From Caecitellus pseudoparvulus (lineage: Eukaryota > Protista > Bigyra: Bicosoecida): a DNA stretch of 64,000 nt. Each line of letters begins with the position of its first letter. Positions within the stretch are counted from its first letter, which is position 1. The stretch covers positions 418,057 through 482,056 of the forward strand of contig CBFFRQ010000019.1 of the NCBI GenBank assembly GCA_965644315.1, written 5' to 3'. This document shows, in pieces, positions 4,811 to 58,485 of this stretch. Below the pieces are notes generated by a model, which worked only from the letters and a program-made list of their open reading frames with translations, was not told the DNA's origin and ran no database searches. A program made the translations under genes and the position numbers.

Positions 4811-5706
4811 GAAGCCTCCTGTTGCGTGTGTGTGTGTAACGGGCTTTGTTCATAGGGCCGGCTGTGCACTGTGTGGCTGTGCGTGCGACGTGGGTGGGTG
4901 AAATTGTCCACGTTTTTGTCGCGGCGACGGCCGCTTGGCCCGAAGTGCTTCACGCACACCCTCCGTTGCAGCGGGCACCTCCGGCTGGGAAAGCCTGCTT
5001 TCGAGCTCCACAACTAGCTAGGATGAGCCTCCGGCGGGTTCGGCCGCGCGGCTGCCGCGGTGCGTGGCGCTGTGGCGTTGCTGGGCGCCATTTCTGGCGT
5101 GCTGATGTGGCGAGCGTTTTCACAAGCCTCGGGTTGGGTTCCGACGGCTGATGAGGGGGGTCAAGGGGGCCATCCGCGCAGACGCACGCCCACATCAACG
5201 CCTGCCCTACCCAGTCCCGCACGCCCGACCAATTCACCATACCGAACACAACGCCACGAACCAGTGTCATGGCACGCCTGCCATTGCCTGTGCAGAGCAA
5301 CCTGCCTGTTGCAGTCCAGCCTGCAACGCCAGCCGTCTGCTTGCCCTGCCCCTGCGCGTGCCTTCCCTACTAGGTCTCGTGAAACCTTACAGTAAGAAAT
5401 TGCTGATTGACTACTGTAGGAGTTCAGGCTTATATCAGAAATGGCGAAATGAGGATTCTTGGGATATTTGAGTTGGGAACCCCACCAAAAACTGATCGAT
5501 ATGTACTTCATGCGGAATCAATCGCTTGCACTCGCCAGCCTGATGCAGGTTTTGCTGTAGGTCGTAGTGATTGGCAAGTGAGAATTGCGGAAATCGGTTT
5601 GCAGGAATAAAATGATACTTCACTCAAATCCAACTCAGAGCATACTAAAAGCTGCACAACTTATCCCAGTACTACGGACTTTAGTTTTGGCTTGGATTCT
5701 TTCCAG

Positions 5707-7044
5707 ATGGCCGCCCATCCGGCTGGCGGGAGCCAGCATGGTTCCCAACCCCACTCAACAACCCCGAATGGCCAACAGGATGCCGTACAACGCGGAATCG
5801 TAAAACCCAGAGGAGTCCCAGTCCCAGATGACGTTGTACTGACCCTTTTCGCAGTGAGTTTTGGCGCTGGATCTTGCTGCTGTAGGTGTGGTACCCCACA
5901 AACCCGTTTCAAATGAAACGCCTAGATTGCCTCAAGCTGGCTGGAGAAGAAAATGGACGAAGGTGGGTCCCTTGTCGATGCTCTTCCGCATAAAGCTGCA
6001 GAAAAGACCCAGTTTATCAAGTTCTTGGAGCGATTGATCAGCGCGGGAGCCGGAACCGTGGACGTCCCCGGTGGCGTTTCATGGCTGGTGCGGCCTGAGC
6101 ATGCAGCTGCATACCTTGGCGTTCCAACAGAGGGAAACGTGGGCCCTGCAGGGCTGTACTGGTCTGCTGCACATGCCCAAGCAAAGTTGTCAGCTTTCTT
6201 GGCAGACCGCAAGAACGGGAAGTCTGTACAGAGGACTTTCCACAACCTGCAATTGAAGGGCAGACTGCGACGGGGACTCAAGGAAGCCATCCAGGCCCTT
6301 GAGCTTCTTGCAGAGCATGCAGTGGAAAATCCAGCCGTGGCATTCCCAGAGGATCCAACTAAATGCCCTTCTGATCCAGCATTGCTCCCATTTTCAGCCT
6401 TGCTGCGGGTACATGTTCACAACCAGGAGGCTCACTCAGGTCCGTGCCTTGGCCCCACCCTGACTCCGGGAAGTGAAGAAGTTGCACGCTTCGCAGCAGC
6501 TTTCGGGTACATTCGTTACCATTCAGTGGTGCGCATGGCTGTTCGCGTGAACCCAAAGCTTGAGCGAAGCCGACGGAAGCGTCAGCGTACGTCCCCGGCC
6601 CTCGATCGACCACGGTCCAAATCGGTTCGAGGAGCTCAGACCCCAAGCCCGGGACAGGCGGGTACCCCTAGCAACATTGCTGATACGCTGGTTGATGAAC
6701 TTACTGAGGCGGCATGTCAGATCGACCCCGCGGCAGTCCCCTTCTTGTCTGTCGAGACCGCTCTGTCTCTTGAGGAGCAAGACGCTGCAATCGCAGCAGT
6801 AGCACAAGCAACTGAGGCTTCAGCATCAAGACGCAATGCTGGAAACCGCGGCAGTGACCCAAGCGGTCTGTTTCACAGCGCTGCAGTGCTTCGAAAGGCT
6901 GCCCAACAAGCAAAAGAGTGCTTCGATGTGTCAAGGGACTCTCAACGCATGCACGACACTCTGAAGGAGGCTCTTGTCCAGCTCTTGGACAGGATGACGT
7001 CGATCGAGCAAGCAGTGACACGGATAGAGGCTCGTCTTGCATGA
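5707..7044 (+). CDS. transposon accessory protein (ORF1), possible degenerate Myb/SANT-like N-terminus, C-terminal coiled coil
   Basis: 363-aa ORF 5953..7044 extended in frame by exon 5707-5853 and intron 5854-5925 (GTGAGT..CCTAG), giving ~421 aa. Its position matches the second ORF of Harbinger elements; the Myb call is weak. Confidence 0.7.
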
Positions 7045-7213
7045 TCCAGGGGACACACCTTTCACTCCTTCCGTCCCGAGTGTAAAGTCATTGTATTTGT
7101 TGTGTATGGTGATCAGAGGAGGGAACAGGAGCGAGACACGGCTTTGCTGATCAATGCACGCTGCCGGGTGGGCCAGGGGGAAGACACCATTGAGAGGGGT
7201 GGTGTCCTCGAGC

Positions 7214-9417
7214 TCACTTCGGTAGGGCAGATCCCGCTGCCGTGGCTGTGCCTTGCGAAGCGCAGGAAAGTGTCAGCCGGTGAACGAGGTCGCCCCTCGT
7301 ACCAATGCAAGACAACCCCGTTTCTTCACATCGTTGGCGAAGCTGGTCGATGGTCATCCGCGCTATCGAGTCCGGGTCCAGACAAGGGTCACCCTCAAGG
7401 AGAAGTCCAGACGCAAACTCCACGAGCGGGCTGTCCTCCAAACCAGATCCCGGACACTGCAACAGGCTAAGCTCCACTGGAGTGCAGTTCTTGTCCAATG
7501 CCAACCTCTCTGCGATCAGAGGGAGTGTGTTGTACAAGTGCGTCGCTGCTCCCGAGGAGTGCAGCTCTTGTTCCTCGGTTCCATCCTCGTGGTAGTAGTA
7601 CACCTCCCACATTGCGGTGTAGGGGTGGACCAACACTGCGTAGCCTCGCTCGGGTTGTGACCCCCCGAGTACATGAGAGGTTCGTTTTGCCGAAGGACCA
7701 TCCCGTGAAACCACTTTCGCAGTCGTGGCATGACTTCCTGTTGTGCACTGCCTCGACTCCGTGTATGACGGGGTTGACCCGGCACAGCAGATGCTGTGCC
7801 GGGCTTCTTGCTCCTCTTCTTCAAGGATGACAAGCCCCCTTGGTCCAGGTCCTGCAGCACCTCGCGATCAAGTCCATGGAGCAGCGTCGTCATGGTTTGG
7901 ATCTGCTCCCAAAGCTCTGACGAGGCCCCGCGAGGGGGCTGGGCTTCAACCTCAGGCGCAGATTCCCCTTGTGCATCACGCACAGCTTTGGCAACGGCCT
8001 GATAAGCCACCTTCATGGGTCGCTTGTTGCGCCGGACTTGCATCAGTCGGGGCAGGTCTTCAAATGTGCGATCTGCTGCCTCCCCTAATGCACGGTCGGC
8101 CTTTACAGTGAGATGGAGCAAGCTCAACGAGTGATTCTTTCGAAGCAGCCATGACTCGCTTCGGAGGCTGCGACGAGTGTAAAGCATCCGAAATGCAACA
8201 AGACCTGTGACCGCCTTGACCGTCAAGAGCAGAAGTGCCTTTTGGTCTGCGAGGAACGGCATCTGTGAGTGTCTTTCGCTCAACCTACCATTGAACGACT
8301 TGATGACGTTGTTGCAGTTCTCCACTACAAGCCTTGCGCTGCTTATCATCTCCGTTCGCAGATCCAAGCTAAGCAGCATCCCAGACGCCATGCGCAGCCT
8401 CTCGAGCTCTTCGGCATCCTCCCACCCAGCCTCAATGTGCTGGGTGATCTTGTCGGCCCACTGTTTGAGGTGGGATGGCTTGTCTCCCGCTACAATGTGC
8501 TTGTTGGAGTGCCAGTACAATGCATCTCCTAGCAGCAGATCGCCTGGCTCCATGACTCCATGGCGGCGCAGGGTTCGCACCGCGTCTGACGCCGCCGCAA
8601 CTTCAGACTGTGATCCAGGCCCCATCTCAAAAATAGCCAAGGGAACTCCAGTGAGGTCTGTCACAAGCAGGAAGTCGTAACCTGGAATCTTGTGGTGGAC
8701 GTTGTAGTGGGATTGGGGTCGGCCCGGCATCGCTTGCATCGGGATGGTTACCCCATCCACTGCCCCGACAACACGGCCAAGTGCGCCGCCAAAAATCCCG
8801 TGAGACACGTCCCGCTGATCTTCGGGTATCTTGAGCATCAAATTTCTGGTGGCAACAGAGAGGACGAAGGGAATCACCTCCCGGAAGATCCCATGCATAG
8901 ATCCTTCCGGCATCTTCGTAATGATCGCCAGAGCGGCAGGAGGGTGCCCACGGAGCTGGGAAATGCAAATGAAAATCCGTACAAAGGCTGAGTGCTGCTT
9001 GGTTTGCATGTTTTTGGCCTTTACGAGAGCTCTCTGGACTTCGTCAGAGAAGTGCCTGTACATCTCTGCGTTCATCCCCGTTAACCTCCAACAGTGCCTC
9101 GGGTTCTGCAGCGTCGCTTCAATAGACTGGCGAATGACAAGTGGCTTGATCCTACGAAGCCTACCTCTGCCTTTTGCTGCTCCGAACTTCGCTTCCCGCT
9201 GATCCCTGCGGGTGTAGCCTTCGGCTCGAAGCTGGCCTGCCAAGGCATGCACCGAGTGTACAAGCAACGACTGCCCTGTGACAAGTGAGGCCGCACCAAG
9301 GTTCATCATGTGGGCACTTGCTTCAAGAATTCCTTGAGCTATTCCGCGTGACGACCTTTCCGGGACAGCTGTGGCCGTTCGCAACGGGGCGCCGGATCGG
9401 TCTCGTTTCGTCGCCAT
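7214..9417 (-). pseudogene. Harbinger-type DDE transposase, frameshifted before the C-terminal SAP domain
   Basis: Same sequence as 58486..60690 but C6 at 7661-7666 instead of C7, splitting it into ORFs 7516..9423 and 7214..7714. DDE core intact. Could be a homopolymer sequencing error. Confidence 0.75.
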
Positions 9418-9911
9418 CACCACTGGGTGAGAATTCGGCTTGGAAGAGGAAACCGGGCGAACAAATGGCGGAAGTTATGAGAAAGCTTGAGGTTGGCCAT
9501 GAATTGCGTGAAATTTTTGAGCCAGCGCTTATTCTGAAAGAGGTAGACGGCCTTGGGTGATTGGCCGTTTTCTTTCGGTGCCCGTAACGCCAACGGCCAA
9601 CGGCACCATCAAACAAAAAACTCAAATTTGAAGTATTTGAATTTTGGCGAAGCCCCCCCGCCGGGTCTTGTTGCGCAAAACCTCCAAGAACGCAAAATTG
9701 CTCTAAGAATGTTGAGCATAGTGCTAGACCTTATATCAGTTTGTCCTACATTTGCCCTTATTGCAGGGTTTCACGAGACCTACCTACCCTACCGACAGCA
9801 GCGCGCTACAAGGCGGCCCCGCGCACACGTCACGCGCTCCCGCCCCTACACGCCCACCCCCGCACCGCCACGAGCAGAGGGCAGGCAGGGGGAGCTCTTC
9901 TGCGTCACAGC

Positions 9912-11504
9912 ATGGACCCCAGCTGGTCCCGCTTGCTCTTGCCGGCTGCAGTGCCGGCGCCACGCGCAGTGTTTGAAGGTGCTGCTGCAAGGCACGCCGC
10001 CGCTGCGCCAACCAAAAGCCAAAATGGCCAGGCGCCCGTGGCGGGCCACGGAGCGGGCGCAAACTTGCCACACGGCGCCATGACCATGCAATGTGGGTAC
10101 TTGACACCCAACCTGCCTGACAGCAGCGGCCGTGCTGTGGGCTGGCCAGGTGACCACCTCGCAATGCCGCCGGCCAGTGCGCGAGGAGTTGGTCAGTGGT
10201 CAGCTTCCCGCGGCACGCACGACGCAACGCAGCCGCGGCATGGGCACACCATGGGAGGTCCTGGCAGGGGCCACCTTGTGGTGCCTGCTTCGGGGGGCGT
10301 GCCTGTTGCGCCAGCGCTCGGTGCGCCTCAGCGTGCTGCTGCTTCCACCGCTGCAGCAAGTCTGTCACTTGGACAGCCCGCAGGGGGGCAGCGCGCCACC
10401 ACCACATCGGGCACCACCGGCGCGCCGGCGCAGGGTGGCAAGGCAGGCAAGCGCAGGGTGCTACAGCGTGGCAAGCACACCTTGCAGCCTTTGACGCAAG
10501 CGCAAGTGGACTCTGTCATCACGCCCGAGCTGCGGAGGCTGGCAGAGGGACTGTCCGTGTCAGGGCGTTCCCGCCTGCCCCTGCAGGCAGTGCAGCTGTT
10601 GCGGGCGTGGCTTTTGATGAATGATGCCTTCCCGTACCCTGATGGACTCAGCAAGCGGGCTCTGGCGGCGGCAACAGGTGCGTGCAGAGCTGCTGCCGGC
10701 GTTTTCTGACATGGCCTGACGTGCCACGCGTGCTGCATCTTGGCCACTCACACCATCACTCCCGCCCTCCGCACAGGCCTGCGCTCGGACCAAGTGACGA
10801 CATGGTTTGCGAACCAACGCAAACGGCACTGGTTCCCCGACAAGCGCAAGCGGCTCATCCAGGGCGGCGCCAGGGGCAGTGACATGTCCACCGCGCCTTC
10901 GAAGGCGCCAGGCAGCAGCGCTGCAAATTCTCCTTCGCTGGCCGACGAGGCGTGTGCAGCCGACGACGGCGCGCGGGACCGCTCCAATCGACGCCTGAAT
11001 GTGGACAGGCGCCGATTTGGCACGCGTATTCGTGGGTTCCATACAAAGGGCGGCTTCTCGCGCTATGATGTGCACAGCGAAGGAGGGGAGCGTGCGAAAC
11101 GCCGGCGCAGCGGCAGGGCATACCTCGGCACTGCCGCCCAGCCCGCCTCAGAAGCCACCTGCTCGCCAACGCCCGACCAGGCGCACGGCATTGCCAAGGA
11201 GGGGCGGCGTGATCTCGCCATCGGCAGCCCTGCGCTGGTGTGGGGAGGGCAATGTCCGCATAGCCGTGACGTTCCGCCTCCAGAGCGAGCCCAACGCAGC
11301 GCGTCAGCGCTGTCCAGCGCCAGCGGCGTGTGGAGCGCATGTGGCTCAGGCTCAACGCCCACTTCATCCTCAACAAACCCCTCCCGATCTGGCGTGGGGC
11401 TTGGCTCCGCCCTTCAGTCGTCCACGTGGCACCTACAGGGCTGGCTACACACTTCCATGCCTCCGCAGCCGCCGCTGCTGCTGCCAGGCAGCACACAGCT
11501 GTGA
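9912..11504 (+). CDS. TALE-class (KNOX-like) homeodomain protein
   Basis: RSRLPLQAVQLLRAWLLMNDAFPYPDGLSKRALAAATG | LRSDQVTTWFANQRKRHW joined in frame across intron 10678-10776; PYP loop typical of TALE. Start uncertain. Confidence 0.85.
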
Positions 11505-20076: not shown

Positions 20077-23000
20077 ATGGCGGCTCCAACTCACTCCACG
20101 GCCGATAGAAGTGCGTAGTTCTGCTCGACAGATGTAGTGTGATTCGAGCAGTGTCCATTTTTCCGCTGTGGTGTGTGCTGCACGTGCTTCACGGGCCGCC
20201 TGCTGCTGCTCCTTGCGCAGGCAGCGGCGGTGTGGCGTTGAGCGACAGCGGCAGTGCCGCCTCGCCCACAGGCCACACACGGCCCGCCAGCGACGACCAA
20301 CACGGCATGTCCCTTTCAGATGGCCTGGGCACGTCCCACACGCTCGGCACGCCGCTGGAGCTGTCTGCGTCCACGGCAGGTGACGGTGCGGAGAGTGCCC
20401 AGCGTGGCAACGGACGAAACGCCGCAGGCACGCCCAGAGCTGACAGCGCCGCCGCCGCCGCAGCATCCGGCGGCATTCCCTCCAACCCGGCCAGTCCTTT
20501 GGCAGGGGCGGTGGCACAGGGGGGACCCGGTGACCCCCACCGCTCCTTCACAGACCACATGCTCCCTGTGTCCCTGGCGTCGGGTGGCACGCACGACAGC
20601 GAGGAGGGGGCGGGGGTGGACTCCCCCACCAGCGCATCCCCGAAACGCAGCAAGGAGGAAAAGAAGGCCCGCAAGGCCGCGAAGAAGGAAAAGAAACGCA
20701 GCAAGGCCCTGGCGCAGCTGGACACGGGGGAAGGCGGTGCAGATGGCAGCCCCCGCAGCGGCAAGACGCCGAAACGCAGCAAGGAAGAGAAGAGGGCCCG
20801 GAAGGCCGCGAAGAAGCAGAAGAAACGCCTGAAAGCCTTGCTGGTGGCGTCCAAGGCCGCCCTCAGTATGCGGGAGGTGCTGGACTCAGAGGGCGCGGCC
20901 TCCACCGTCAGCGTCTCCAGCAGCGGGGGCAGCGAGGGGGGTGCGGAATTTGACCCCTTTGCCCTGCAGGCCAAGTCGCCCAGTGCCGCCCGGGCGAAGG
21001 AGCGCGCCCGTGAGAGGGCCTTGGCCGCTGCCCGCCGGGGTCGCGCGAGCTTCGTAGGCAGCCCTGTCGCGCTGCGACCTGGATCTGCGCCCGCTGAGCG
21101 GGGTGGAGATGGTGGCGGTGCGGTGCATGCGGCAGCCCGCGGTCGCCCCGCCTCCGCCCGACAGGGTGGGGAGGCTGATGTGGGCAGCAGCTCGGAGGAG
21201 GAGGGGGGTGGAGGTATTTTCGTGCGGCAACGGGTGGCCACGGACGGCTCTGCGTCGCAGCGGTCGCACTTTTTGATGGACGAGGGGGAGCGGGGCGGGG
21301 GGGTGGAGACGCCCGCCATTGACGCGCCGGCACCCCGCATCCGCATCCCCCCCTCCCCTGCCAGTGAGGGGGGGGGCATCCTGGACCTGGGGGGGGTCTC
21401 GGGCACCGGCACGGGCACGACGCCCGAGGTCGCACCGCGGGTCGCACTGGACGACGCGGGGCGCCCGCTGCACGTGTCCACCGGACCGGACACCGCCGAC
21501 GGCGGCGATCCTGACGTGTACACGCGGGGCGGCATCCACACAGACGAGCGCCTGCTTGGCGTTGACTCGTCCCCCAAGTTGGTGCGGCATGTGTCAGCGC
21601 CAGCGGGGGGTGGGCCCACGCACGCCGACGAGGAAGGGGCGCTGGCCGGGGGCGTGTCGCCGAAACGCATGGAGTCGGTGCCTGACTCATCGTGGGGCAG
21701 TGCAGGCGTGACGGCGGGGAACAGCTCCATCCCGGGCTACGAAGTGTCGGGGTCGGTGACGCTGGAGGTGGACCACGCCGAGGGTGTGTTCGGGCAACGC
21801 AGCACGCCCGGCCACGAAAAGTGCTACCTGGTCGCACGCGCTGGCGCCTTCAGCGTGGACAGCACTGTGGCGCGGGCGGGTGCCGCTCGCGTCCGGTGGC
21901 AGGAGGACCTGCACCTGGAGGTGGAGGGCGTTTCTCTGCAGGAGTCACTGTGTGTGGCGCTCATGCAGCGCAGCATGGCGGGGGAGCCCGTGCAACTGGG
22001 CGTGGCCAGTCTTGGCCCACTCCCCCCTGACACGTCACGTGAGGTGCCGCTGGCTGACATCCCCATCACCGCCACATCACCCGCCTGCCATGGCGGCACC
22101 CTCCGCATGGCCCTGCGGTGGCTGCCCACTGCTGTGCGACTGCAACGGTTGCAAGAGGCGGCGGCGGCGAAACAGGCGGCAGCCGACGAAGCCGCGGCAC
22201 GATCTCGCGTCGCGCAGCGGTTGCAAGCGCAGTACCGCGGGTGGCAGGGTCGCAGTGCTGCCATGCGACGCCGCGAGCAGGTCGCAGCCGCCGAGAAGGC
22301 GCGGGACCAGGACGCTGCGCTGCGCATTCAAGCCGCCGCCCGAGGTCGCCAGGGTCGGCAGGTCGCGGCAGCTCGTCGCGAGGAGGTCGCACAAGCACAC
22401 GCTCGCCAGCGGGAAGTCGCAGCTGTGCGACTGCAGGCGGCGGAGCGCGGCCGTGCGACGCGAGCACGCGTGCACGCACAGCGGGTCGCAGAGGCCGACG
22501 CGGCGGTGAAACTGCAAGCACTGGCCCGGGGTCGGACAGGCCGCCGTGCTGCCACATCGCGTCGACGGGAGGTGCAAGCTGCCTCGCAGCACGCCGCACG
22601 CCTCGCCCTCATCGACAAGTTGGAGGCAGAGGCGGCAGCAGCGGAGGCGGCTGGGGGTGCAAATTCCGCACCCGGCCCCCGCGGCCTGCTCGTGACGCCC
22701 GACTCGCCCCGGCGGCGCCCTGGCTCGGCCCAGCGCCAGGTGCGTTTCGACGGCGACGGGGAGGAGCGTGGTCGCAGCAGCAGTGACTCGAGCGACGCGA
22801 CCTCCAGCAGTGGTCGGTCGCAGCAGCAACGCAGCACAGTCGCTGCGGGTGGCGAAGTCGGCGGCACCGCACGTCACACGTCCACCCCTGTGCCCCTGGA
22901 TGACGGGTACTCAGACGCAGATGTGTCACGGGGATTGAAGTTCATGCAGCTGTACGGGGGGGATGCGGCGGCGCGGAAACGGCGGGAAACCGCGGGTGCA

Positions 23001-26000
23001 TCCGCGCCCTCCCCCGGGGTCCTGGCCCGCTTCGACGGCCAGGGGCACAGTGACTCGGAAGAGGGCGGGGAGGAGGGGGGCGGGTCGCCCCCCCGCTGCA
23101 ACGCAGCAGACACCCCCCGCACGTCGCGGCCCTTCTCCCCCGTCGTCAGTCCGCGCAACGCGGGCATGGTGCGGCGGCGACAGGGCGCTTTCCCCGTGGG
23201 AGTCGACGGGGGCGATGCGGTTGAGGAGGATGAGGGGGTGGGTCGTCTGGATGTGGCGGCTCTGCGGGAGCGCGTGTCAGGGGCGGCCCACGACCCCGTG
23301 CGCAGCCTGGTGCGGGGTGCGGAAAAAGAAGAGTCAGCGGCGCGGCTGGCGAAGGAGGTTGCGGCACAGCACGCGGCGGGCGGCGTGGGTGGGCCCACCG
23401 TCCCGCCTGCCCCGCCTCGTCCCCGCCCCCCTGACGTACGGTTCCTGCGCGCCAACTCCACCCCCGTGCGACCCTCGCACCGCCCCGGACCGCCCAGTCG
23501 CACGAACACGCCCCCCTCGGCGTGCGACCGCCCCCCCAGCCCCGACCCCCCCCCGCGCCGTGCCCTAACCAGTGCCAGCCCCCATGGCTCCAGCAGCAGC
23601 TTGGCACTGCCGTCTCACCGGGGGCGGCGGAATCGACGTGCCAGTGCCGCGAATATCACCTCGGCGCTGTTCTCAGGGGGCCTCGTCGCGGGGGCGGCGT
23701 CTGACTTCGCGGAACAGCGCTCCAAGGCGGAGCCGGAACAAGCTGTGGAGGGGGGCGGGTCTCTGACCCGTTCCGACTCGTCGGCCAGTGTCGCGTCGCA
23801 GGTGGACGCTGGGCTGCGACGGGCAGGGGTGGAGAGCGAGTGGGAGGTCGCAGATGCGACCCCCTCAGGTCGCAAGGCGAGCCTGGCCAAGATGGCGTCT
23901 CAACGGCGCTCCATGGCCACGTCAGGCCGAGGGGAGGCGTTGCTGGGTCCGCGGGAGAGCGGCAGGTCGCGCGTCGCGAGTGCGACCCGCTCGCCCCCCG
24001 CCGCGACCTCTGAGGCCGCCCTGGAGGCGTTTCTGCACACGCGGGAGCTGGATGCGGCCGAGTCCACCCGCGAAGCCAGCAGTGTATCCGAGGCACGCTT
24101 GCTGACGCCCGACCGACACGGGTCGACGGTGGAGCCAGATGCGCTGATCGCAAGTGCGACGCCGGGCAGTCCCGGCGACGTCTTGCGACGCCTGGGCCTG
24201 CGACCGCTGCGGTCGACCTCGGCCGCACACCCCCTGGGCACCGGCCGGGGGGGGGACACGCCAGACAGCGACGGGGTCTCGGCACGCAGTGTGTCAGAGG
24301 CCAGTGGCGGCGGGCAGCCCATGCCGTTCGTGCGGCTGGCGAGGGGCGAGGAGGGGGGGTCGCGACCCCCCTCCCCCACCGGCAGTGTCGCATCCAACGC
24401 CTCCAGTGTCGAGCAGCTGCACCGCGCTGACGGACTGCACGCGCTGGCAGACGTCATGCCGGGGGGCGGGGAGGACATTGCGGAATTTGACGAGCTGGTC
24501 GCAGCCGCCGACGACGATGCCGACGACATGCCCCGCCGCGTCAGCGTCGCCACCACCGCCATCGCCGTCCCCTCCTCCCAACTGCGGAAACGCATCCTGA
24601 GATCGGAGGCCCACCGAGTGCCTGGATCCTCCCCCCGGCACGGAGTGGGGCGGGGTCGCATCGGGTCGCACGACAGCGGCGGGGCGGAGGAGGTGGGCGC
24701 AGGGGCGGCGCCTGAGCGGCAGGGCAGCGCCACAAGTTCCGCATCTGGGGGCGGCGCCAGTGCCCACTCGCGGCACAGCAGCATGGACTCTGCCATCGGT
24801 TTCTTGGATGATGCGTTGCCTGCGACGGACGCGCTGGACCTGCGACTGGCGAGCACCCTGCGACCTGGCGAGGAGGGTGCGACCATCGACGAAGACGCAC
24901 TCCTGCGACCGCCCCCTGAGCTGACGTCCCTGAACCGCAATGCGCCCATCGCCGCGGGTGACCTGACGCAGGTGCTGCACGAGTCAGCCCGGGTGCAGAA
25001 AGAACAGAACACGACGCACAGGGGTGTAGGCGTGACGGTGTCGCGGTCGTGGATGCAGATCGTGGAGGGCGGCTCGGCCGACATGTACCAGATCTGCCTG
25101 GACACGCGGCCGCGGGCGCCGGTTACAATTTCCGCATTTTGCGGCCCCGGTAAGCACGTGCACATCGCCCCCACCACCCTGGTGTTCTCGCCCCGCAACT
25201 GGTTCATCCCGCAAATTCTCCGCGTGTCCGCTCTGGACGACCTGACCTCCACGGGCGTTTCTCGGGGCATTGTCCTGCACCAGTGCGCCAGTACTGACAC
25301 GCGCTACGGGCCGTCGTGCGTTGTTCCGCCTGTGAAAGTGTTCGTCATTGACTCCGACGAGGGCTTTCTGTTCGCCTGTGGCGACGCCGCGTACAACAAG
25401 CTCGCACTTGCGACGGGCTTCCTGTCGCACGTGGAGGGGGTGGGGGGGGCCGTTTCAACGGCGGCGAGCGGGGGGCCCGCCGCGAACACCAAGCGGAACA
25501 CCAAGCACCTCCTTACCAGCGGGGAGGATGGCCTGGTGCATGCGGGTCCAGCGGGGCCGCATCCCACACTTGCCGCCAGTGGCGCCATCACGTCTGACGC
25601 CGCCGCCGCTGGGGGCGGCGGTGGCGCCACCACGCCCCACACCCTGGCCCAACTGACTCACACAGACCCCGGTGTCCGCATCGTCGCTGCGGCAGCCGCT
25701 GCGGCAGTGGGGGCGGTGTCTGGGCAAGCCCCCACCACGGTGCTGTCGGCGGCATCCGCGAGAAATTTCGCGAAGCAGAGCAGCGCGCTGGGGGACACGT
25801 CGGGGGACGCTGCGGCGGCGCGCCTGGCGGCTCTGGAGCGCGCTGGCATCGCCCCCAGCACCCTGCAAGACCCCTACCACAACCCCTTCGACCGGCGTTT
25901 CGCGCCGTTGCTGGCGGGGGTGCTGTCGCAGTTCAACACGCCACGTGTCGTGACGCTGCTGCCGACGGCGGAGCGACTGGGCAGCGTGTTGGAGGTGATC

Positions 26001-29000
26001 GCGCAGCGGGTGGGCGTGGCGGCGAATCGGGCATTTGCATTTCTCCGCAGTCGAGGACAGGTGATGCTTGAGGATGAGGAGGATGGGCCCACCTCCCGCT
26101 TCGGGCGGCGTGACTCGCGCATCGCCTTGGGGTCGCGGGAAGCGACAGAGGAAGGCATGGGCGTTTCTGCCCAGCGACGGCGCCTGCTGGGGGTGGTGGA
26201 TGTCACGACAGAGGCGTTCGTGTGGTCGCCTGACCCCGCAGTACGCCTAGCGGTCGCACTTGGTCGCAAGGTCGACGCGGTGAAGTTAGCGCGGCGGGAG
26301 CGCGCCTTTGTCCCTGGCAGCTCACAGGGGGCGGCGGCGACGGCGGTGGCGGCGGAACACGGCGGCGGGGCGGCGGGGCACGCGGCTGTTCCGGGTTCGT
26401 TCTGGCGCCAGCCCACCTCCACCCGTCTGCTGCACCTGCGCATGGAGTATAGGGGGGGGGGCTTCATGCGCCAAGTGCCGGTGTACGTGTGCGCTGAGAC
26501 ACTGCAGGCGCCACAGCAAGCCATGGCAACCCTGACGGGGCGAGGGGGGGGGGGGACCCGAGGGGGGGACCCAGGGGGGGGCATGCAACCCCCCACCCCC
26601 CTCCTCCTGGAGACCCAGGCATCGGCGGGGACACCCCACCCGGACGGGGTGGCCGTGTCGCAGCGACCCTCGGCGGGGGCACCCCCCCCCTCCACGCGGG
26701 GGAAGGGGGGTGGCAGTGCGTGGAGTGGGGCCAGTCCCCCCTCCACGAGCCATGGAGGGCAGCAATACTTGCGCGTGACGTACCCAGGCCAGGAGCTCGC
26801 CCTGTACCGCCTCATGAACGCAGCAGCCAACGGGACGTTGACTCTGGGGTCAGGCGCACCCACGCACCGCCCCGCGACACGCAGCCTGTCGCCGCGACCC
26901 GGCGCACCCGGAACACGGGGCTCCCTCATCCATGCCGAGGAAGAACATTCGCAGCACCTGCAGAGCCCGCTGTTGAGCAGCCCTCACCGCGAAACGGGCG
27001 GCGGCCGTGGCGGGCGCCTGGCGGACTCGCCGGGGGGCCTGGGGGGCCTCGCCTCGCGATCTGGAGTCGCGGCCACAGCCGTGCGCATGGAAGACACCAC
27101 CGACCTCGGCGCAGGTGCACTGGCCCAGACGGAGCGCGTGTGGCAGGGGTTGTGGGATGCGCTGTGGGTGCCGCGTGCGGATGCGGCGGCGGTGGTGGCC
27201 GCGGCTGCGGAAATTGTGGCCGCTGCAGTCATGCCTGGTGGCATGGCCACCGCGCAGAACAGAGCCCAAGCCGCCCACTCCAAGTTGCAAGCGACGCCCG
27301 GCATGTCCCCACCCCCCCGCCGCCGGCCAGAGCGGGGTGCGGAACTTGCGGAATTTGCAGGCATCCCCCTGCCGCCCTCCTCCGCCATGGCGGGCGAACC
27401 GCGTGTTCCGGTTCGGCGGTACGTGTTCCCACAGGGGTGGGTCACGGAACACGTGCCCCTGCGTGCTGCACGACGTGTTCTGCCTGGGCTCAAGTTCCCC
27501 CTGCACCCGTCAGTGGGCGGCGGCGGCGGCGGCGGCGGCGGGGGGCACTGCGTTGACCCGCTCCTGGATCTGCCGGATGCGGACGCCAAGCTGGCAGCGG
27601 GGGCGCTGTCGCCGCGGGGAGGGGAGCCCGGAACACCCAGCGGGGCGGAGGGGGTCGATTCGGAGGCGGGGCTGCCCCCCGCCACGCGTGCTGCGTTGCA
27701 GGACGCGGGCGAGGCCCTGGAGTCACACTGCGCGGCGGGCGCCGCTGACGTCGTGCGGCACTTCGGGTTGACTCGCCTGGTGTCGCGGCGACCAGGCATG
27801 TTCATCCCCCCACCGTACGAGGAGGCCCTTGCGGCTCGCCTTGTAGAGGAGGAGGAGGGGTCTGCGGGGGGAGCAGGGTCGCCGCCGCCACGCATGGCGG
27901 GGGACGCCGGCACGACCTCAAGTCGTGTCCGCCGCCCCTCCCCCGGCCGCCTCGGCGCCCTCCCTGACGGCACCACCCCTGGCTTCAGCGCACGGCAGAG
28001 CCTGAACGGGGGCCGTATCCGGCTACGGCCGCCGGCGCTGCTGCCGACGCTGCTGGCGTACGTGCGGAATTTGCACACCTACCGCGTGTTCGCTGCTGCG
28101 GTGGGCCCATACGCGTCCCTGCCGAGAAGCGGGGGGGCGGGAGGTGGGCCCATCCCCCGCTCGCCACCTGCGCTTGCGGCGGTGCCAGAGGGGGGCGAAG
28201 GGGGGGGGGTGCCCGTGCCCCCCCTTCGGCTAGGGGGTGTGGCGGGGGGTCCGTCTCACGACCACACCTCCGCCATGGCCACTCACATGGACTCCCCCTC
28301 AGGCCTGTTCAGCAACCGCCCTGCGTTGCTGTCCGCAGATCGCCTGCGGGTGCGGGCGGCACATGCGGACCCCGCCGCCGCAGCGGGGCAGCGGCTGGGG
28401 CGACGATCTGTCATCGGGCATCCGGGGGGGCTGCTCCCCGTGGAGGGGCGGGGCGGGGAGGACGCGCACATCACGCGCACATCACGCGGGGGTGACTCCC
28501 CGCCCCAACCCAGCGCCGCCGTCGCGGGCGGTTTGCGGTGGGGGCCCCCCAGTCCCCTGCGACAGGGGGGGCGGGGTCCAGATCACCCGGAACACAGCCC
28601 CTTCGCCTTGCCGGAACAAGTCCGCCCCGACGGCGGGGCCCTGGGCCCCCTCCTCTCCAGCACGCCAGCGGACGACGCCGCCGTGTCCCTGCTCGTGTCA
28701 CCCCGCTCCAAGCCGCGCCGCGACCCGTCCGACCTCGTGAACTTCGATTTCCGCACCATGCAGGGCACGGCCCGGGCGGTGCACGCGAGGGGGGGCGGTG
28801 GCGGGGGCGGGGCGGGTGCGGAATTTGAAGTCCGGCGGCGGAAATTGGCGTCGGACATCCTGGCGCCCTCCGCCTCCGCTGGCAGCCTGGGCAGCCTGGT
28901 GTCGCACGGGGGCAGCGTTTCTTCAGATGCCTCCCCCGTGCCGTCGGGCGATGAGGGCGACGTGGATGGCACGAGTGACGAGGAGGGGCTGCAACGCGGT

Positions 29001-32000
29001 CCGTGGAGCAACGCCGCTCTCGTGCCTGTCATGCGGGTGCGCCCAGTCAGCGGGGGGAGGGGGGGGCGCCGTGGCAGCATGCCGGGGGGGGGGTCGGGTC
29101 GTGCGTTGTCACCGCGCTCCGCCCACGGCAAGCGCACGTCCATGGTGGCGGGGGGTCGCGGCGTCGGTCGCAGCGACGTGCTGGCGCGACTGTCCTCCAG
29201 CCAGCGCCTGGCCCGGAACACGGCGGCGGAACGCTGGGCGGCGCAGGGGCAGTTGAAACGCAGCGTGATGACGGGGCAGGGCGCCGACGCGACTGTGGAA
29301 GCGTGGCTACAGCGGGGGGAACTGCTGCCGCCCAGCGACGGCGGCAACAGCGACCACGCGCCGCAGGTGGTCGCAGAGGCGGGCACGACCGCGACGCGGT
29401 ATGCCCGTGAAGAGATGCACTTGGCAGTGCCCAAGGCGGAACGTGTTCGCGCTCGTCGCCTGCTGCACCCAGAAACGTCCGTGGAGGCGGCGGCCATTGA
29501 GGCACAGCGGCGGGCACTGGACGTCGCGGGGTCGGGTCGCGGCGTGCACATCGGCGCCAGCGACGTGCTGCCCCAGGGGTCGACCGTCCAGCACCCGCGC
29601 GACCGGGGGCACCCCGACGAGGTCGCGGCTGCGACCGCTGCGGCCCACCGCCACCGTGCCATGCGCTTGGGCCTGAACGTCGCACGTGAGGGGGGGCACA
29701 TGGCCCTGCTGTCGACCCGGGAAGCGACCTCTGGTAGCATCGCGACGCCCAAGCCTGGGCAGAGTCTGAAGGAGTGGTGGCGAGAGGGGGAGGGTGTGGA
29801 GGGGGGCGCGACCGTGCCACTGCCGCCGCGCGATGCGCAGGGAGGTGTGCCGCGGGCGGCGCCGTCGCGGGGAGGTCGGCACGTGCGACCTGCCTCTGCG
29901 ACCGCGCGCTTGCAGGCCCAGGCCGACGCCGAAGCCGCCACCTCCGCAGCCCTCTCCCACCGCGTCCGCCGCGTGCGATCTGTGCTCGGAGCGTACATCG
30001 CGGGCGACGTCATCGTGCGGCGGGAGGGGGGGCAGCGTGTCACGCGGTCCAAGCAGCAGGGGTTCATGTGGGCGACGGGGCGTCCGGGCAAATTCCGCAT
30101 CAAGCTGGCCAGCGGCGGCGACGTCGTCGCAGGGTACGGCGTGGCGAAACAGACCCTCATCCAAGACTCCGACTACGCTCATGCTCTGGCACAGGGGGGA
30201 GGGGGGGGGTCCGCCCGCCGCATGCCCCCCTCCTGCCGGGAAGCTGGGTCCATGAGCCCCATCCGGAAACGCAGCAGTGCGGGGGGGGGGCGTCGCCCTG
30301 CGTCGGCGGGGTCCCCCCGACCGGTGTGGCGACCCACTGCCGGGCGGGGGGGCGACAATGCGACCTACAGCGGTGGTCGCACGCTGCCCCCTGGCCTGGG
30401 GGGTCCAGGGGGGGGTCTTGAGGACGTTGCCGCCGCCGATGCACTGCGGCTGAGCAGCCCACAGGGGAGGGCGGGGAGTCGCACCGCGACCAGCCCCGAC
30501 CGCGCCTCGTCGCCCCCCCCCCCTGCGGGCCACGAGGCTGCGACCGCACCCCCCTCCACAGCACAGGCGCTGGTGGTGCCACCGGAAGTGGCTGCGTTAC
30601 GCCGGCGTTGGGCGTTTATGGCCACTTCCCGCGTCGCTCGTTGGAGCGCGGGGCAGGGCGCCAGTGACTCATCGCACGCGGTCGCCAGCACTGTGGCTGC
30701 GCTGCGAGCAGGGGGCGCTGGCACCGGCCGTGTTCCGAGTGTAGCCGGAACATCCCTGTCGGAAGGCGGCACGCTGGACCCGGAACAGGCCCCGCTGTCC
30801 CTCGCGGAGGCTGCGGAAATTGCACAGTACCGCCTGCAGATGAGCGACGCAGAGGCCCTGGCTGCTGCGTTGCGCACTGTGCGGGCCAGGGGCGTGAGTG
30901 ACCCAGTGCTGGCGCGACTCATGGCAGCGCTGTCCTTGGAGGGTGGGGACATCTCCGAGACATCAGTGTCGCTTCAGCTGCAAATCAGGGCTCGCAGACG
31001 ACAGCTGGCGGCGGCCGAGGGGGGGGGGGTTGGCGCCGTGCCGGTGTCCAGCACAGCGGTCTCCAAGGCCCCCCCCCGCCACCGCCCGGCAGGGGTGGAC
31101 GCATCGGGGGCCATCGCGAGAGCCCCCCTGCAGCAGCCCCAGCAGCGTCTGGCAGCGCGAACACGCCTCGCATCGGCCATTCTGTTCGGCAGTGCGGGGT
31201 CAGGGGCGTCTCAGGCTCTGGTAGCGGCTGAGGCTGCGCGGGTGGTAGGGGCCTCCGCGACTGGATCGGGGGTGCTGGAGCCGGAGGGGGGAGCTCGGAA
31301 CACGGAACACGTGGACGCCTCGTCGGCGCTGGCTGCGTGGGAGATGCAGGAGGGGTATGGGGGCGGGGGGGGTGGGCCCACCGCTGCGGACATTCCGACG
31401 GGACCCCGTTCCCTGTCAGGGGGGTCAGGGGGGGGTGTCGAGCCCTTCCCCCGCCCCGCCCCCACGGGGTCCAGCCACACCCGCTCTGCTCGTCGGGATG
31501 CCGCCGCCCAACGCAAGGCCAAAGCCCTGGCAGTGGTGGACACGTACGACGCCATGGGGCTGGGGCCGCGGGACATGATGGCGGTTTCTTGGCGCATGCG
31601 ACACGCCGCCGCCGCCGCCGCCGCCGCATCGCGCAGAGCCGCAGGTGCGAAGAAGTGGGATGAAAGGGGGGGGGAGGAGGGGGGGGGCTCGGACGGCGAC
31701 GGCGGCGGCGGGCGGCGCGACCGCGAGGCGGAGGCGGCGGCGGCCACGGTCGCAGCTGCGACCCGCTCAGCCCTGTCCGCCCCCACCCCCTATGACGTCG
31801 CCTACACCCCCACCCTGCACGGCGTGAAGGACGACGGTCGCAGCTTGCACTTGGAGCGGCAGGCACAGGAGTTTGCGACGTCGGCGCAGGCCGCGACGCG
31901 CCTGGCCGACGCGGCACGTCGCACAGCGACCAAGGCCCGCGAGCGCTGGCGCCGCGCCAGTGCCCTCGTCACCGCCCTGTCCACCCCATCCGCACAGTCA

Positions 32001-35000
32001 GCAGAGCAGGCTGGGGAGGGGGGGCGCCGTCGCCGCGGCCGCCGTCGTGACGGAGCAGGGGGCGGGGAGGGCGCTGCGGAAATTGACGCCGCGGCCCCCG
32101 ACCCCAAGCCCAAGAGCAAGCGCGGCGCCGGGTCCAAACGCAGAAAGAAGCGCAAGAACATGCCCCCCCCCGCAGCGCCGTCCTTCTCAGTGCCCCTCTC
32201 TGGTCGCACAGCGACGTTGGCGGGCGGCAAGCGGGGTCGCGGGAAGCAGGTCGCGCCCCGCGCGGCCCCGCAGTCGCCGCCGGACACCGCCCCCGCCCCG
32301 GACACCGCCGACATGATCGCGCACATCGGCAGCATCGCTGCGGATGCGGGGTCTATCCCCCGCGGTTTCGCCTCCCTACACCGGTCCTCTCGCTGGTACG
32401 GTCTGAACGAGGGGGGGGGCGGCGACTTCCTCACTGTGGCCACAGCCATGGCCACAATCCGGCGCATGGTGCGGGCCGTGCGAGCCCGCCGCCACGCCGC
32501 CGCTGCCCCCGACAGCCCTGACTCCGCCACTGGCTCCGCGGGGGGTGACTCCGGCGACAGCGACGTGTGGGGCGAGTCGCACCACCGTGAACGGCACGGC
32601 GAGTGGTGGGGCGCTGCGTTAACCCCCGAAGCCCGGCTGAGCCGCCGCGCAGAGGAGAGTCGCAAGAAGAGCGGCGCGGAAACCAGTCGCCTGTACACAC
32701 AGCTGCAGCTGAGTGTGAAACGCCAGCGCGTCGCGATGTCAAGTCGCCAGGAGGAAATCACAGCGCAGCACAAGGTGTACTTGAAGCTGTCAGCGGTGGC
32801 GGGGGGTGCTGCGGCGACGGGGGATGTGGATGCGGGGGGAGGGGGGGACCCCGCCCCCGAGGCTGGGGGGGGGGCGGCATCCGAGCCAGCGAAGGGCAAG
32901 GGCCTCACTGTGCGTTTCGGCGCAGAGGAGGGCGGCGGCAGCAGCGGCGGCAGCGACGCCGACAGCAGCGACGACGAGGCGACGGCGCTGGTCGCAGGCG
33001 CCGACAACTCCGCCGCAGCCCAGGCCACTGAGTGCGTGCGAGTCAGCCACATCGCAGCGGGGGGGCAGCACTCCCTCGCCATTGTGTCGGGCGGCGTGCT
33101 GTTCGCGGCGGGGTGCGGCGCGTCGGGGCAGCTGGGTCGCGGCGACCGGCACGATGCCCGAGCACCCTCCCTCGTCACCGCCCTGGCCCGCGTGCCCATC
33201 GTGAAGGTGGCGGCGGGGGCAGCCCACAGCCTGGCCGTGTCAGCTGACGGGCATGCGTTTGCCTGGGGGCGGGGGGCGGAGGGGCAGCTGGGGCTCGTGA
33301 CTGCCGCGGAAGCGTCCAGTGTAACGCACCACGTGCAGCCGCTGGTTGGCGGGGGCGACGAGGACACCGGCCCCGCGACGTATGTCCGCACACGGGAGGG
33401 CGGCGGTGACGCCCTCACACCCCGGCTGGTGTCCACCCTGGCGTCCAAGGGTGCGCGATGTCGGGTCGTGAGTCTCGCGGCAGGCGCCAACCACTCCCTG
33501 TTCCTCACCGTCACCGGCACCGTGTACGCGTGTGGCGAGAATACGGCGGGGCAGTGTGGTGTGGGGCACCGGGGCAGTGTGTTCGTGCCCACACCACTGG
33601 ACATGCCGGGAGGTGCCAGTGTATACCACGTGGCGGCGGGGACACGCCACAGTGCAGCTGTGGCGGGGGCGGGGGACGTGTACACGTGGGGGTTCGGCGG
33701 GAACGGGCGGCTGGGGCTGGGGGACGAGGAGGACCGTATTACGCCGCACCTCGTGCGCAGCATCTCCGTCAGCGCCAACACCGTCGTGTACCAGTACGAC
33801 GACGACGAGGATGAGACGGACGATGAGGAGGGGGGAGGAGGGGGGACATGGGGGGCTGAGGGCGAGGTCGGTTTCTACTCGCCCTCACGGGATACCTCAT
33901 CCCCTGCGAGGGGGGGGCGGCGCCAACGCAAGCTGTACCGATCGCGCGGTGTGCGGGTGCGCATGGTGGCGTGTGGTGACTCGCACACTGCTGCGTTGAC
34001 GGAGCACAAGACCGTGCTGACATGGGGTGGCAACGCCTCTGGGCAGCTGGGGTTGGGCCACACCTACGACCGCCACACGCCAGAGCTCGTGTGGAGCCTC
34101 GCTGGTAAGCAGGCAGTGTCTGAAGTGGCGCTGGGCATGGAGCACTCGGCGTTCGTGACGGAGAACGGCGGGCTGTTCACCTGCGGAAATTGGGAACTCG
34201 GCGCCCTGGGCCTCGGGCGCGCTTCCCGCGGCGGCGCGCACAGCAAGCCCACTGACAGGCGGTACCAGCCGCCCCCCGGCACAGGACCTCTGCACCTCGT
34301 CATTCCCGGTGGTGACCTGCAACCCGTGCGAACGGGGTTGGGTGGCACGCGCATCGTGACTGTACCGCGCCTGGTCAAGGCTCTTGTCGGCACACGTGTT
34401 CTGAGTGTGACGACGGGGCACTGCCACACGCTGGTCGTCAGCGACAGCCCCGCCCGCGCCCCCGACCACGTCGTGCCGCTGCTGTGTCGCAAGTACCACG
34501 CCACCAACGCCCTGCCGCCAGGGGCGGTGGTGGTGTACTACGCCGCTCTCGGCATTGGCGCAGCGGGGGCGGCCTGGACCAAGGCGCGACGGGCGGGGGA
34601 TATGGCCCGCCTCGTGCACCTGCGTGATGCGTGGCTGGGGCGTTTCGGGCCCCTGCTCTCCCTGCGTGAGGGGCCCACAGGCATGGCGGCGGCTATTTCC
34701 GCACACTCCGCTCGCACGCAGCGCGCCCTGTCCAGCCGCCGCCCCGCCAGTGCCTTTGGGCTGGGGACGAAAGGCGCGACCCGAGATCGGGCGGCTGCCC
34801 CCGCCAGTGGGACGGGCAGCAAGGCCGCCTCCAAGCGCAAGAAGACCCGCAAAGGCAAGCAACGCAGCAGGAGTGCGGCACGCAGCAGCCGGCCCGCCTC
34901 GGCCGCCGGCAGCGCTGTCAGTGGACGCGGGGGGGGGCTGGCCGCCTCCCCACGAGCCCCCCTCACGCAGCAGCCGGCTCCGGCGCCCGCTCCAGTCGTA

Positions 35001-35372
35001 CACCGCCCCCCCACGTACAGCGACACCATGCAGCGTGCAGCGGCAGTGTACGGCGTGCGACCAGTTTCTGCCCGCCGCCGACCCCGCGGGGAGTCACCGG
35101 GGCCCGATGGTGAGGAACAGGGTGGGCCCATGGTGGGCCCACGCCCCGATGCGCAGCACGGCCCTGGACCTGCACCCCCGTCCTACCCAGTGCGACCTCA
35201 GAGCGCGACGGAGCGTGGTCGGGGGGGGCCGCGCGGCCGGCTGCTGCGACCTGCCAGTGCCAAGCCCATGCTGCGACAGCACACAGCGGCACCTGGCATT
35301 GCTGAAGCAGGGGCGTGGCACGGCAGTCGTGTGGCGGATCACCGACCCACGCAACGCAGCGAATACAAGTGA
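20077..35372 (+). CDS. giant (~5060 aa) C2 + IQ + Ig/Calx-beta-like + RCC1-repeat protein
   Basis: Exon 20077-20110, intron 20111-20220, then an open frame to 35372. C2-like domain ~21740-22130; four IQ motifs (e.g. LQAQYRGWQGR, IQAAARGRQGR) ~22210-22560; beta-sandwich (TLVFSPRNW..PQILRVSALDD) ~25020-25360; RCC1 repeats ~33036-34440. Confidence 0.85.
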
Positions 35373-52767: not shown

Positions 52768-53105
52768 CACTAGTAATTTGCAAGTTCAAAGTGTTTTTTA
52801 CTAAGTGAGAATCTTGTACTAGTGCGAAGACAATGGAAAAATATCGTGCTAGTGTGAGCATGAGGGTCAGTGTGCACGCAGTCAGCTGTGCTAGTGTCAA
52901 GTCCGTGCTAGTGAAGTGCTTGAAAGCCGCAGAGGCGATGTGAAATACTAGTGTGCTTGGGGTTTGCCAAAACTGCACATCACCCTGTTCACTAGGGGTG
53001 GGTTGTGCGCTAGTGCGTCAGACCTGTCCAAAGCGTCGCTAGTGTGAGCGCGGTAGGCAGGATTCACGAGGGCCAGCTGTACTAGTGAGGTGAGCTGTAC
53101 TAGTG
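52768..53105 (+). repeat. left subterminal (A/G)CTAGTG array
   Basis: About 11 CTAG cores in ~340 bp (52769, 52818, 52848, 52890, 52907, 52947, 52991, 53009, 53038, 53081, 53099), mostly CTAGTG. Confidence 0.85.
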
Positions 53106-56100: not shown

Positions 56101-56978
56101 CCTCCAGTGGTACTTCGGCAGCCGTGCGTATAAGCACGTCCCACAGTGGCATGGAAGGCACTTCGCACTGTCCACCTGCCAGTCCCTTGGGTAAAGGTAC
56201 AGTGATGGAGATCGGGGAGGGGGTTCCTTCCGCGGCGATCTCCAGCAGCTTGTCGATGCTTGGCACCATGGGACACTGTGGAGCTGTGCGATGCTCCTGA
56301 CGAAGAAGCACCTCAGAAGTCTTGATCGTCTTGTTGTGCTCCTTGATGATCTCCGTCAGCACACTCTTGCTGGCGTTGAAGCGCAGCAGACACTTGAGTA
56401 TGGTCCGGCCCATGCCCCCTCCAATGCCTCCACCACTACCCGCACTCTGTGCTGACAGCCGATCAGCGTGCGCTATGGCTCTGGCGACCAGCTCGGTGTG
56501 GCGTGGAGGGATGTGCTTTGCTGCTCCGGGTTGCTTTCGTGGTCCCCCGGTTGGCTGGGGAAGAGCTGGCTGTGCCATCTGGGCTTGGACGGTGGCGGCG
56601 ACAGGCTCAACAACCAAAGCAAAGGGTGACCCCCCCCCTTGTTAGGTCTCGTGAAACCTTACAGTAAGAAATTGCTGATTGACTACTGTAGGAGTTCAGG
56701 CTTATATCAGAAATGGCGAAATGAGGATTCTTGGGATATTTGAGTTGGGAACCCCACCAAAAACTGATCGATATGTACTTCATGCGGAATCAATCGCTTG
56801 CACTCGCCAGCCTGATGCAGGTTTTGCTGTAGGTCGTAGTGATTGGCAAGTGAGAATTGCGGAAATCGGTTTGCAGGAATAAAATGATACTTCACTCAAA
56901 TCCAACTCAGAGCATACTAAAAGCTGCACAACTTATCCCAGTACTACGGACTTTAGTTTTGGCTTGGATTCTTTCCAG

Positions 56979-58316
56979 ATGGCCGCCCATCCGGCTGGCG
57001 GGAGCCAGCATGGTTCCCAACCCCACTCAACAACCCCGAATGGCCAACAGGATGCCGTACAACGCGGAATCGTAAAACCCAGAGGAGTCCCAGTCCCAGA
57101 TGACGTTGTACTGACCCTTTTCGCAGTGAGTTTTGGCGCTGGATCTTGCTGCTGTAGGTGTGGTACCCCACAAACCCGTTTCAAATGAAACGCCTAGATT
57201 GCCTCAAGCTGGCTGGAGAAGAAAATGGACGAAGGTGGGTCCCTTGTCGATGCTCTTCCGCATAAAGCTGCAGAAAAGACCCAGTTTATCAAGTTCTTGG
57301 AGCGATTGATCAGCGCGGGAGCCGGAACCGTGGACGTCCCCGGTGGCGTTTCATGGCTGGTGCGGCCTGAGCATGCAGCTGCATACCTTGGCGTTCCAAC
57401 AGAGGGAAACGTGGGCCCTGCAGGGCTGTACTGGTCTGCTGCACATGCCCAAGCAAAGTTGTCAGCTTTCTTGGCAGACCGCAAGAACGGGAAGTCTGTA
57501 CAGAGGACTTTCCACAACCTGCAATTGAAGGGCAGACTGCGACGGGGACTCAAGGAAGCCATCCAGGCCCTTGAGCTTCTTGCAGAGCATGCAGTGGAAA
57601 ATCCAGCCGTGGCATTCCCAGAGGATCCAACTAAATGCCCTTCTGATCCAGCATTGCTCCCATTTTCAGCCTTGCTGCGGGTACATGTTCACAACCAGGA
57701 GGCTCACTCAGGTCCGTGCCTTGGCCCCACCCTGACTCCGGGAAGTGAAGAAGTTGCACGCTTCGCAGCAGCTTTCGGGTACATTCGTTACCATTCAGTG
57801 GTGCGCATGGCTGTTCGCGTGAACCCAAAGCTTGAGCGAAGCCGACGGAAGCGTCAGCGTACGTCCCCGGCCCTCGATCGACCACGGTCCAAATCGGTTC
57901 GAGGAGCTCAGACCCCAAGCCCGGGACAGGCGGGTACCCCTAGCAACATTGCTGATACGCTGGTTGATGAACTTACTGAGGCGGCATGTCAGATCGACCC
58001 CGCGGCAGTCCCCTTCTTGTCTGTCGAGACCGCTCTGTCTCTTGAGGAGCAAGACGCTGCAATCGCAGCAGTAGCACAAGCAACTGAGGCTTCAGCATCA
58101 AGACGCAATGCTGGAAACCGCGGCAGTGACCCAAGCGGTCTGTTTCACAGCGCTGCAGTGCTTCGAAAGGCTGCCCAACAAGCAAAAGAGTGCTTCGATG
58201 TGTCAAGGGACTCTCAACGCATGCACGACACTCTGAAGGAGGCTCTTGTCCAGCTCTTGGACAGGATGACGTCGATCGAGCAAGCAGTGACACGGATAGA
58301 GGCTCGTCTTGCATGA
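56979..58316 (+). CDS. transposon accessory protein (ORF1), copy 2
   Basis: Identical to 5707..7044 (offset 51272); intron 57126-57197. Confidence 0.7.
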
Positions 58317-58485
58317 TCCAGGGGACACACCTTTCACTCCTTCCGTCCCGAGTGTAAAGTCATTGTATTTGTTGTGTATGGTGATCAGAGGAGGGAACAG
58401 GAGCGAGACACGGCTTTGCTGATCAATGCACGCTGCCGGGTGGGCCAGGGGGAAGACACCATTGAGAGGGGTGGTGTCCTCGAGC

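Follow-up and report, generated by a model that had tools for sequence, protein, structure and literature searches.

A 64,000-bp stretch of the genome of Caecitellus pseudoparvulus (Bigyra: Bicosoecida; assembly GCA_965644315.1, contig CBFFRQ010000019.1, positions 418,057 to 482,056 of the forward strand; hereafter the window) was analysed, with a focus on a DNA transposon present in it as two copies. Both copies begin with TAGG and end with CCTA, carry terminal inverted repeats (TIRs), contain a transposase gene that converges with a partner open reading frame (ORF), and are flanked by 5-bp target site duplications (TSDs). We hold with considerable confidence that the transposon is a recently active element of a small and divergent lineage of marine microbial eukaryotes, the families of which produce TSDs of 4-5 bp. 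The features of the two copies are as follows, with positions counted from the first base of the window.

5366-5370: left TSD of copy 1, CCTAC
5371-9782: copy 1 of the transposon, 4412 bp, TAGG..CCTA ends
5371-5396, + strand: left TIR of copy 1, starting with TAGG
5953-7044, + strand: partner ORF, 363 aa when read from this ATG, convergent to the transposase gene
7214-9417, - strand: transposase gene; in copy 2 it encodes 734 aa, counted from the first ATG
9757-9782, - strand: right TIR of copy 1, ending with CCTA
9783-9787: right TSD of copy 1, CCTAC
53627-61308, - strand: host ORF split by copy 2, in a multicopy repeat
56638-56642: left TSD of copy 2, CTTGT
56643-61055, + strand: copy 2, intact, 4413 bp, the same as copy 1 save one C
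61056-61060: right TSD of copy 2, CTTGT

Copies of the element

The first-pass annotation of this DNA had described different 5-bp duplications around the two copies, and TIRs that are perfect over 16 bp and imperfect to about 26 bp; both descriptions hold, with 23 of the 26 TIR positions matching. The single C that separates the copies lies in a C run after position 7660. This C is carried by all of the source-run depth (806.6/806.6), so the four copies assembled without it reflect an assembly slip, and the interpretation of copy 1 as a genuine frameshift mutant was rejected.

The genome surveyed for copies comprised 30.6 Mb in 215 contigs. Six full copies were found, together with three copies truncated at contig ends, one copy that an internal deletion has reduced to 1937 bp but that keeps intact ends and is flanked by a 5-bp TSD, and one additional single end. 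One relative with 95% identity, located on contig C95, begins with CAGG, not TAGG. The six full copies show zero substitutions among them, thereby indicating recent transposition. The insertion of copy 1 is polymorphic, and its site is empty in other samples (runs X7 and X3). Run X3 also shows a joint that may represent a short, internally deleted derivative of the element. Loose ends in runs X1 and X3 (window 5394-5468) correspond to a diverged end from a related subfamily, in which TAGG is followed by four additional bases.

Length of the target site duplication

All seven genomic copies with both ends are flanked by a 5-bp duplication, and six different 5-mers are represented (ACTAA, GCAGA, TCTCA, CCTAC, CGAGA, CTTGT and again GCAGA); the probability of seven matching 5-mer pairs by chance is approximately 1e-20. 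The longest flanking duplication is exactly 5 bp in all six full-length copies tested, and none of them showed a TSD of 2-3 bp. TA stands directly outside GG..CC at both ends of the element. The element could thus be read as an ordinary GG-ended Harbinger or PHISTA-like transposon with a TA duplication, in which the 5-bp repeats are incidental; GG ends are usual among the PHIS groups (PMC4482050), and PHISTA is a known PHIS member with TA TSDs (PMC12730594).

The sites of the two copies decide against this reading. The repeat that hosts copy 2 has eight near-identical copies and diverged relatives, and this multiplicity supplies paralogous empty sites, five of which contain CTTGT once and no TA. 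An empty allele at the site of copy 1, present in contigs from runs X7 and X3, skips exactly 4417 bp, equal to 4412+5; this allele may be either the pre-insertion state or the product of precise excision. It follows that the terminal TA belongs to the element. The frame test proposed in the first-pass annotation gave the same answer, in that only the 5-bp parse yields a continuous frame of 1129 codons in the ORF that copy 2 interrupts, whereas the TA parse disrupts it. With the matching 5-mer pair present in all seven copies that have both ends, a TA duplication has a negligible probability. A parse without any TSD was likewise rejected by the host frame, the paralogous empty sites and the 4412+5-bp skip. 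These results confirm that the element makes a true 5-bp TSD, and the different cleavage stagger that had been suggested for it is borne out by the seven copies, the empty sites and the empty allele.

Target preference

A preference for C-Y-T-R-Y, which had been raised on the basis of the two copies in the window, matched 2 of 11 sites, and both were the sites from which it had been drawn. Its three middle positions are close to Y-W-R, a pattern that proved common, whereas neither the outer C nor the outer Y is needed. Y-W-R occupies the centre of the TSD in 8/11 sites (four of the 11 being single-ended) against a background of 9-10% (p ~1e-6, post hoc). The same pattern was found in 4/4 held-out junction flanks, which are single flanks from loose ends, and in 3/5 sites of sister families. 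CWG stands at the TSD centre in 3/11 sites; CTNAG fits 0/11, and an ANT consensus is likewise absent from the 11 TSDs. The data suggest that the target preference is N-Y-W-R-N with free outer bases. TWA and CWG, the targets of other Harbinger-type elements, are both cases of Y-W-R, and this suggests that the element's target is read in the same way but cut more widely.

Transposase and partner gene

The domains of the transposase and the candidate parts of the partner gene are located as follows.

8320-8757, - strand: catalytic core, with D at 8755-8757, D at 8524-8526 and E at 8320-8322
7388-7725, - strand: clade-specific C-terminal beta domain, ~113 aa, pLDDT 89.7
7274-7363, - strand: SAP domain at the C-terminal end of the transposase, E 8e-5, just under the cut-off; SAP structures at Z ~6
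5707-5853, + strand: candidate first exon of the partner gene, 49 codons, in frame with the downstream ORF, as read from the sequence
5854-5925, + strand: candidate GT..AG intron of the partner gene, likewise a sequence reading

The earlier assignment to Harbinger-type (PHIS) transposons was sustained by a PF13359 match over the cut-off (E 8e-7), by alignable motifs and by predicted structures resembling ALP1 and HARBI1. No variation at D184, D261 or E329 (positions counted from the second ATG) occurs among the aligned relatives (13/13). In the structural model, D184 lies within E179-191, D261 just past E257-260 and E329 within H298-338, and this predicted setting agrees with that of PHIS enzymes, in which the first D is in strands, the second D between a strand and a helix and the E in a helix. 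The spacer that separates the second D from the E (D2-E spacer) is 67 aa long and helical in the model. The nearest predicted structures are ALP1/HARBI1-like and DDE_Tnp_4 proteins, with template modelling scores by target of 0.54-0.75 in five of six rows. Solved structures gave generic DDE matches only, and no solved structure of a PHIS transposase was found by sequence or fold search. The C-terminal beta domain has weak matches to SH3/PWWP-like barrel folds (Z <=5.9) and no Atlas feature match. The SAP domain occurs in this family only, among the clade proteins scanned or aligned.

The partner ORF has no Pfam or Atlas match. Myb/SANT was not matched in eight partners from the clade, nor in the partners of the two control families introduced below, so this negative is a weak one. 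The element contains two long ORFs only, and neither SET, THAP nor YqaJ gave a Pfam match in it.

Relatives of the transposase

Four additional related families were found in the same genome. A profile search of 1.84 billion representative proteins returned 10 clusters at E <=2e-24, followed by a drop to ~1e-9; all ten of the weaker hits that were scanned are PF13359 proteins (E 1e-8 to 1e-5), and their D-D-E and flanking motifs align with those of the element. Word-index protein searches yielded P0001 only. No relatives were found among viral contigs, plasmids, PDB sequences or NCBIfam insertion sequence (IS) models, or by a pattern scan of metagenomes. Clade members are almost only metagenomic, with one member (P0009) in an NCBI assembly. 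Their layout is constant: a transposase of ~700 aa (two are shorter fragments), and a convergent partner wherever the contig is long enough.

A tree of the DDE region had been proposed in the first-pass annotation as a means of placing the element among named groups. In a quick tree without bootstraps, the clade forms one separate branch with a support of 96 in the SH-like approximate likelihood ratio test (SH-aLRT); the tree comprises unnamed PF13359 proteins and two controls from the same genome, without named members of Pangu, Nuwa, ISL2EU, Spy or HarbingerS. The D2-E spacer measures 61-84 aa in the clade compared with a median of 43 aa across 78 PF13359 proteins outside it; the two controls have spacers of 39 and 42 aa. 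P0036 is a weak sister to the clade (SH-aLRT 81) with a different layout and no ends found; it is a 408-aa PF13359 protein accompanied by a co-oriented upstream ORF of 212 aa, present in marine metagenomes (L103-L107). A match on C94 was set aside as a more distant fragment without TIRs.

The long stem of the clade and the sharp gap in E-values also bear on its rank. They would suit a separate eukaryotic offshoot of the prokaryotic IS5/IS4-like family, and hence a new group at superfamily level, not a PHIS subgroup, and the weak PF01609 matches that the transposase shows besides PF13359, together with a bacterial cluster among its nearest Atlas structures, point in the same direction. Prokaryotic IS5 subgroups are known to make repeats of 2-9 bp. 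HARBI1/ALP1 clusters nevertheless head the structural list, no NCBIfam IS model or plasmid was matched, and the element has the convergent two-ORF layout seen in this genome's TWA and CWG Harbingers. We consider such an offshoot improbable and prefer placement within the PHIS superfamily.

Two members of the clade (L095:1065-2940 and L057:1-627) adjoin AT-rich genes that resemble, in appearance only, capsid genes of polinton-like viruses or virophages that infect protists; PHROGs gave nothing useful on these genes.

Duplications of sister and control families

The family represented on C116 and C92 has 5-bp TSDs (TCCGA and ACAAA) and GGG ends. A metagenomic family with TAGG ends also has a 5-bp TSD, the left flank of L063 being equal to the right flank of L060/L061. 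The C22 family, with GG ends, shows a 4-bp TSD in 6/7 copies in the genome and in 2/3 copies in other samples. The TSD of the single C128 copy reads as either 3 or 5 bp. Partial TIRs or boundaries were present at metagenomic loci L090-L093 and L095-L099, where contigs were collapsed or cut, and no usable TSD was obtained from them. Ends of GGG, GG or (A)TGTG occur among the sister families. The first-pass annotation had viewed TAGG..CCTA ends and a 5-bp TSD as marks of a candidate new family; the family is indeed distinct and unmatched to a described group, but these two characters do not define the lineage because the sisters have other ends and one of them makes 4-bp TSDs.

Two families served as controls within the same genome, a TWA Harbinger and a CWG family, and each shows normal 3-bp TSDs. 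The CWG family (L082/L083; G000 C60, C44) is a 16-copy, 5.0-kb Harbinger-type family that resembles NuwaI and is found here in a protist; NuwaI had been reported from animals only (Han et al., PMC4482050).

Two copies of the 4-bp family were of note. The copy on C159 (L058/L071) has unmatched flanks (ATGG and ACAA), for which recombination between copies, an adjacent deletion and misassembly are candidate explanations. The copy on C181 (L074/L047) lies directly beside, and probably inside, a sister element, the ends of which could not be defined.

Comparison with described groups

TSDs in the PHIS superfamily have been described as TWA, AT, none, ANT, CWG and C|TNA|G (Han et al. 2015, PMC4482050). 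Harbinger relatives were said to make TSDs of 0, 2 or 3 bp in a December 2025 paper based on the Repbase classification (PMC12730594), and the 3-bp TWA rule was restated in 2026 (PMC13668399). A 5-bp TSD therefore fails the 0-, 2- or 3-bp criterion of every described PHIS group. Han et al. use the TSD for groups within PHIS and not for the superfamily itself (PMC4482050). The DDE region is alignable at the threshold of these authors (E<1e-4), and this, together with the TIRs and with the two ORFs known from PHIS elements other than Spy, would by sequence place the element in the superfamily. The element works like a two-gene Harbinger and is outside PIF/Harbinger, Nuwa, Pangu, ISL2EU, PHISTA and Spy as these are defined.

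PIF/Harbinger elements resemble it in the helix-turn-helix DDE transposase with PF13359, the two ORFs, the short TIRs and the size of about 4.1-4.4 kb, and their TWA target is one case of the Y-W-R centre. They differ in the TSD (3-bp TWA compared with 5 bp, or 4 bp in the sister family) and in the D2-E spacer (~35-48 aa compared with 67 aa). The ends of the present element start with TA, its transposase of ~700-735 aa has an extra beta domain and a SAP domain, and no Myb/SANT was found in its partner. NuwaI and NuwaII are also two-ORF PHIS elements, of 4.5-4.7 kb, and CWG fits Y-W-R; however, they have fixed targets (CWG; C|TNA|G), GG or GGG ends and a Myb/SANT partner, whereas the outer target bases of the present element are free and non-palindromic sites prove its TSD to be 5 bp long. 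PHISTA and ISL2EU share a TSD other than 3 bp, and PHISTA partners also lack Myb/SANT, but their TSDs are 2-bp TA or AT, and ISL2EU has THAP and YqaJ domains. Compared by description, Pangu/Harbinger2 has a second ORF without known motifs, as here, but a 3-bp ANT TSD, and HarbingerS, from stramenopiles, encodes a SET domain.

The described groups were compared by their descriptions and not by Repbase/Dfam sequences, and the element might consequently belong to a group already catalogued (e.g. Repbase Harbinger2/Pangu, HarbingerS or an IS5-like group) with a recorded TSD of 4-5 bp. HarbingerS is a stramenopile group for which Han et al. found no TSD, and for NuwaII a 5-bp CTNAG could not be excluded by its describers (PMC4482050); the presence of P0009 in an NCBI assembly also favours this possibility. 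It is opposed by the range of 0, 2 or 3 bp in the Repbase-classification paper, by the nearly complete restriction of the clade to nameless metagenomic proteins, by the lack of a SET or YqaJ gene, and by TSDs that fit neither CTNAG nor ANT. We regard a catalogued origin as unlikely, although less so than an IS5/IS4-like offshoot, and the lineage as likely to be undescribed.

Proposed mechanism and significance

In DDE transposition, the length of the TSD equals the stagger of strand transfer. By known DDE chemistry, the transposase would pair the 16-26-bp TIRs and excise the element, the two 3' ends of which would be joined to target phosphates separated by 5 nt; gap repair by the host would create the 5-bp duplication. 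Target statistics are consistent with a complex that reads the central Y-W-R and attacks one base further out per strand. The helical D2-E insert might alter the spacing of the active sites or the bend of the target, and the partner protein would probably be needed for TIR binding, by analogy with the Myb/SANT partner of Harbinger.

With moderate confidence, we favour an undescribed monophyletic PHIS group that has kept the Y-W-R core while its stagger increased from 3 nt to 5 (or 4) nt; candidate causes of this change are the new C-terminal domain and the helical D2-E insert. Several points weigh against the explanation of the element given here. The insert cannot alone set the TSD length because it occurs in families of both the 4-bp and the 5-bp kind, and 5/78 PF13359 proteins outside the clade also have spacers of 59-70 aa. 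The target argument is weakened by the post hoc choice of Y-W-R and by the single-ended or single-flank sites. The place of the clade within PHIS is not settled by a quick tree of this composition. The element was present in none of the listed RNA runs, a result that is silent on whether it is silenced.

PHIS groups are defined, and non-autonomous elements filed by annotation tools, according to TSD length and sequence; a lineage with 4-5-bp TSDs widens the range of the superfamily and would be misfiled under such rules. Since both hAT and the prokaryotic IS5 subgroups offer precedents for shifted TSD lengths, the finding is a moderate surprise. The hAT5, hAT6 and hAT7 lineages have a shifted TSD length (PMC12730594) and are an analogy only, since they are sub-lineages of a different superfamily. 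Han et al. call for further work on the question of how the stagger is set in Harbinger-type transposases (PMC4482050). One genome with intact, recently active families of 3 bp (TWA, CWG), 4 bp and 5 bp makes this question directly testable; if the proposal is true, identical, intact and polymorphic families of the three lengths permit a direct domain-swap test of TSD length.

Host repeat and neighbouring genes

The repeat that hosts copy 2 (window 52800-63900) has a motif that looks Plavaka/CACTA-like; its host ORF gave no Pfam match of Plavaka/CACTA type, and no TIRs were found for the repeat. A relative of this repeat is interrupted by the C44 copy of the CWG family. A gene at 9912-10709, with a weak Homeobox_KN match (E 0.009), begins ~125 bp downstream of the polymorphic copy 1. 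Between the two copies, window 20139-35372 holds an open frame of 5077 codons with RCC1 repeats near its C terminus.

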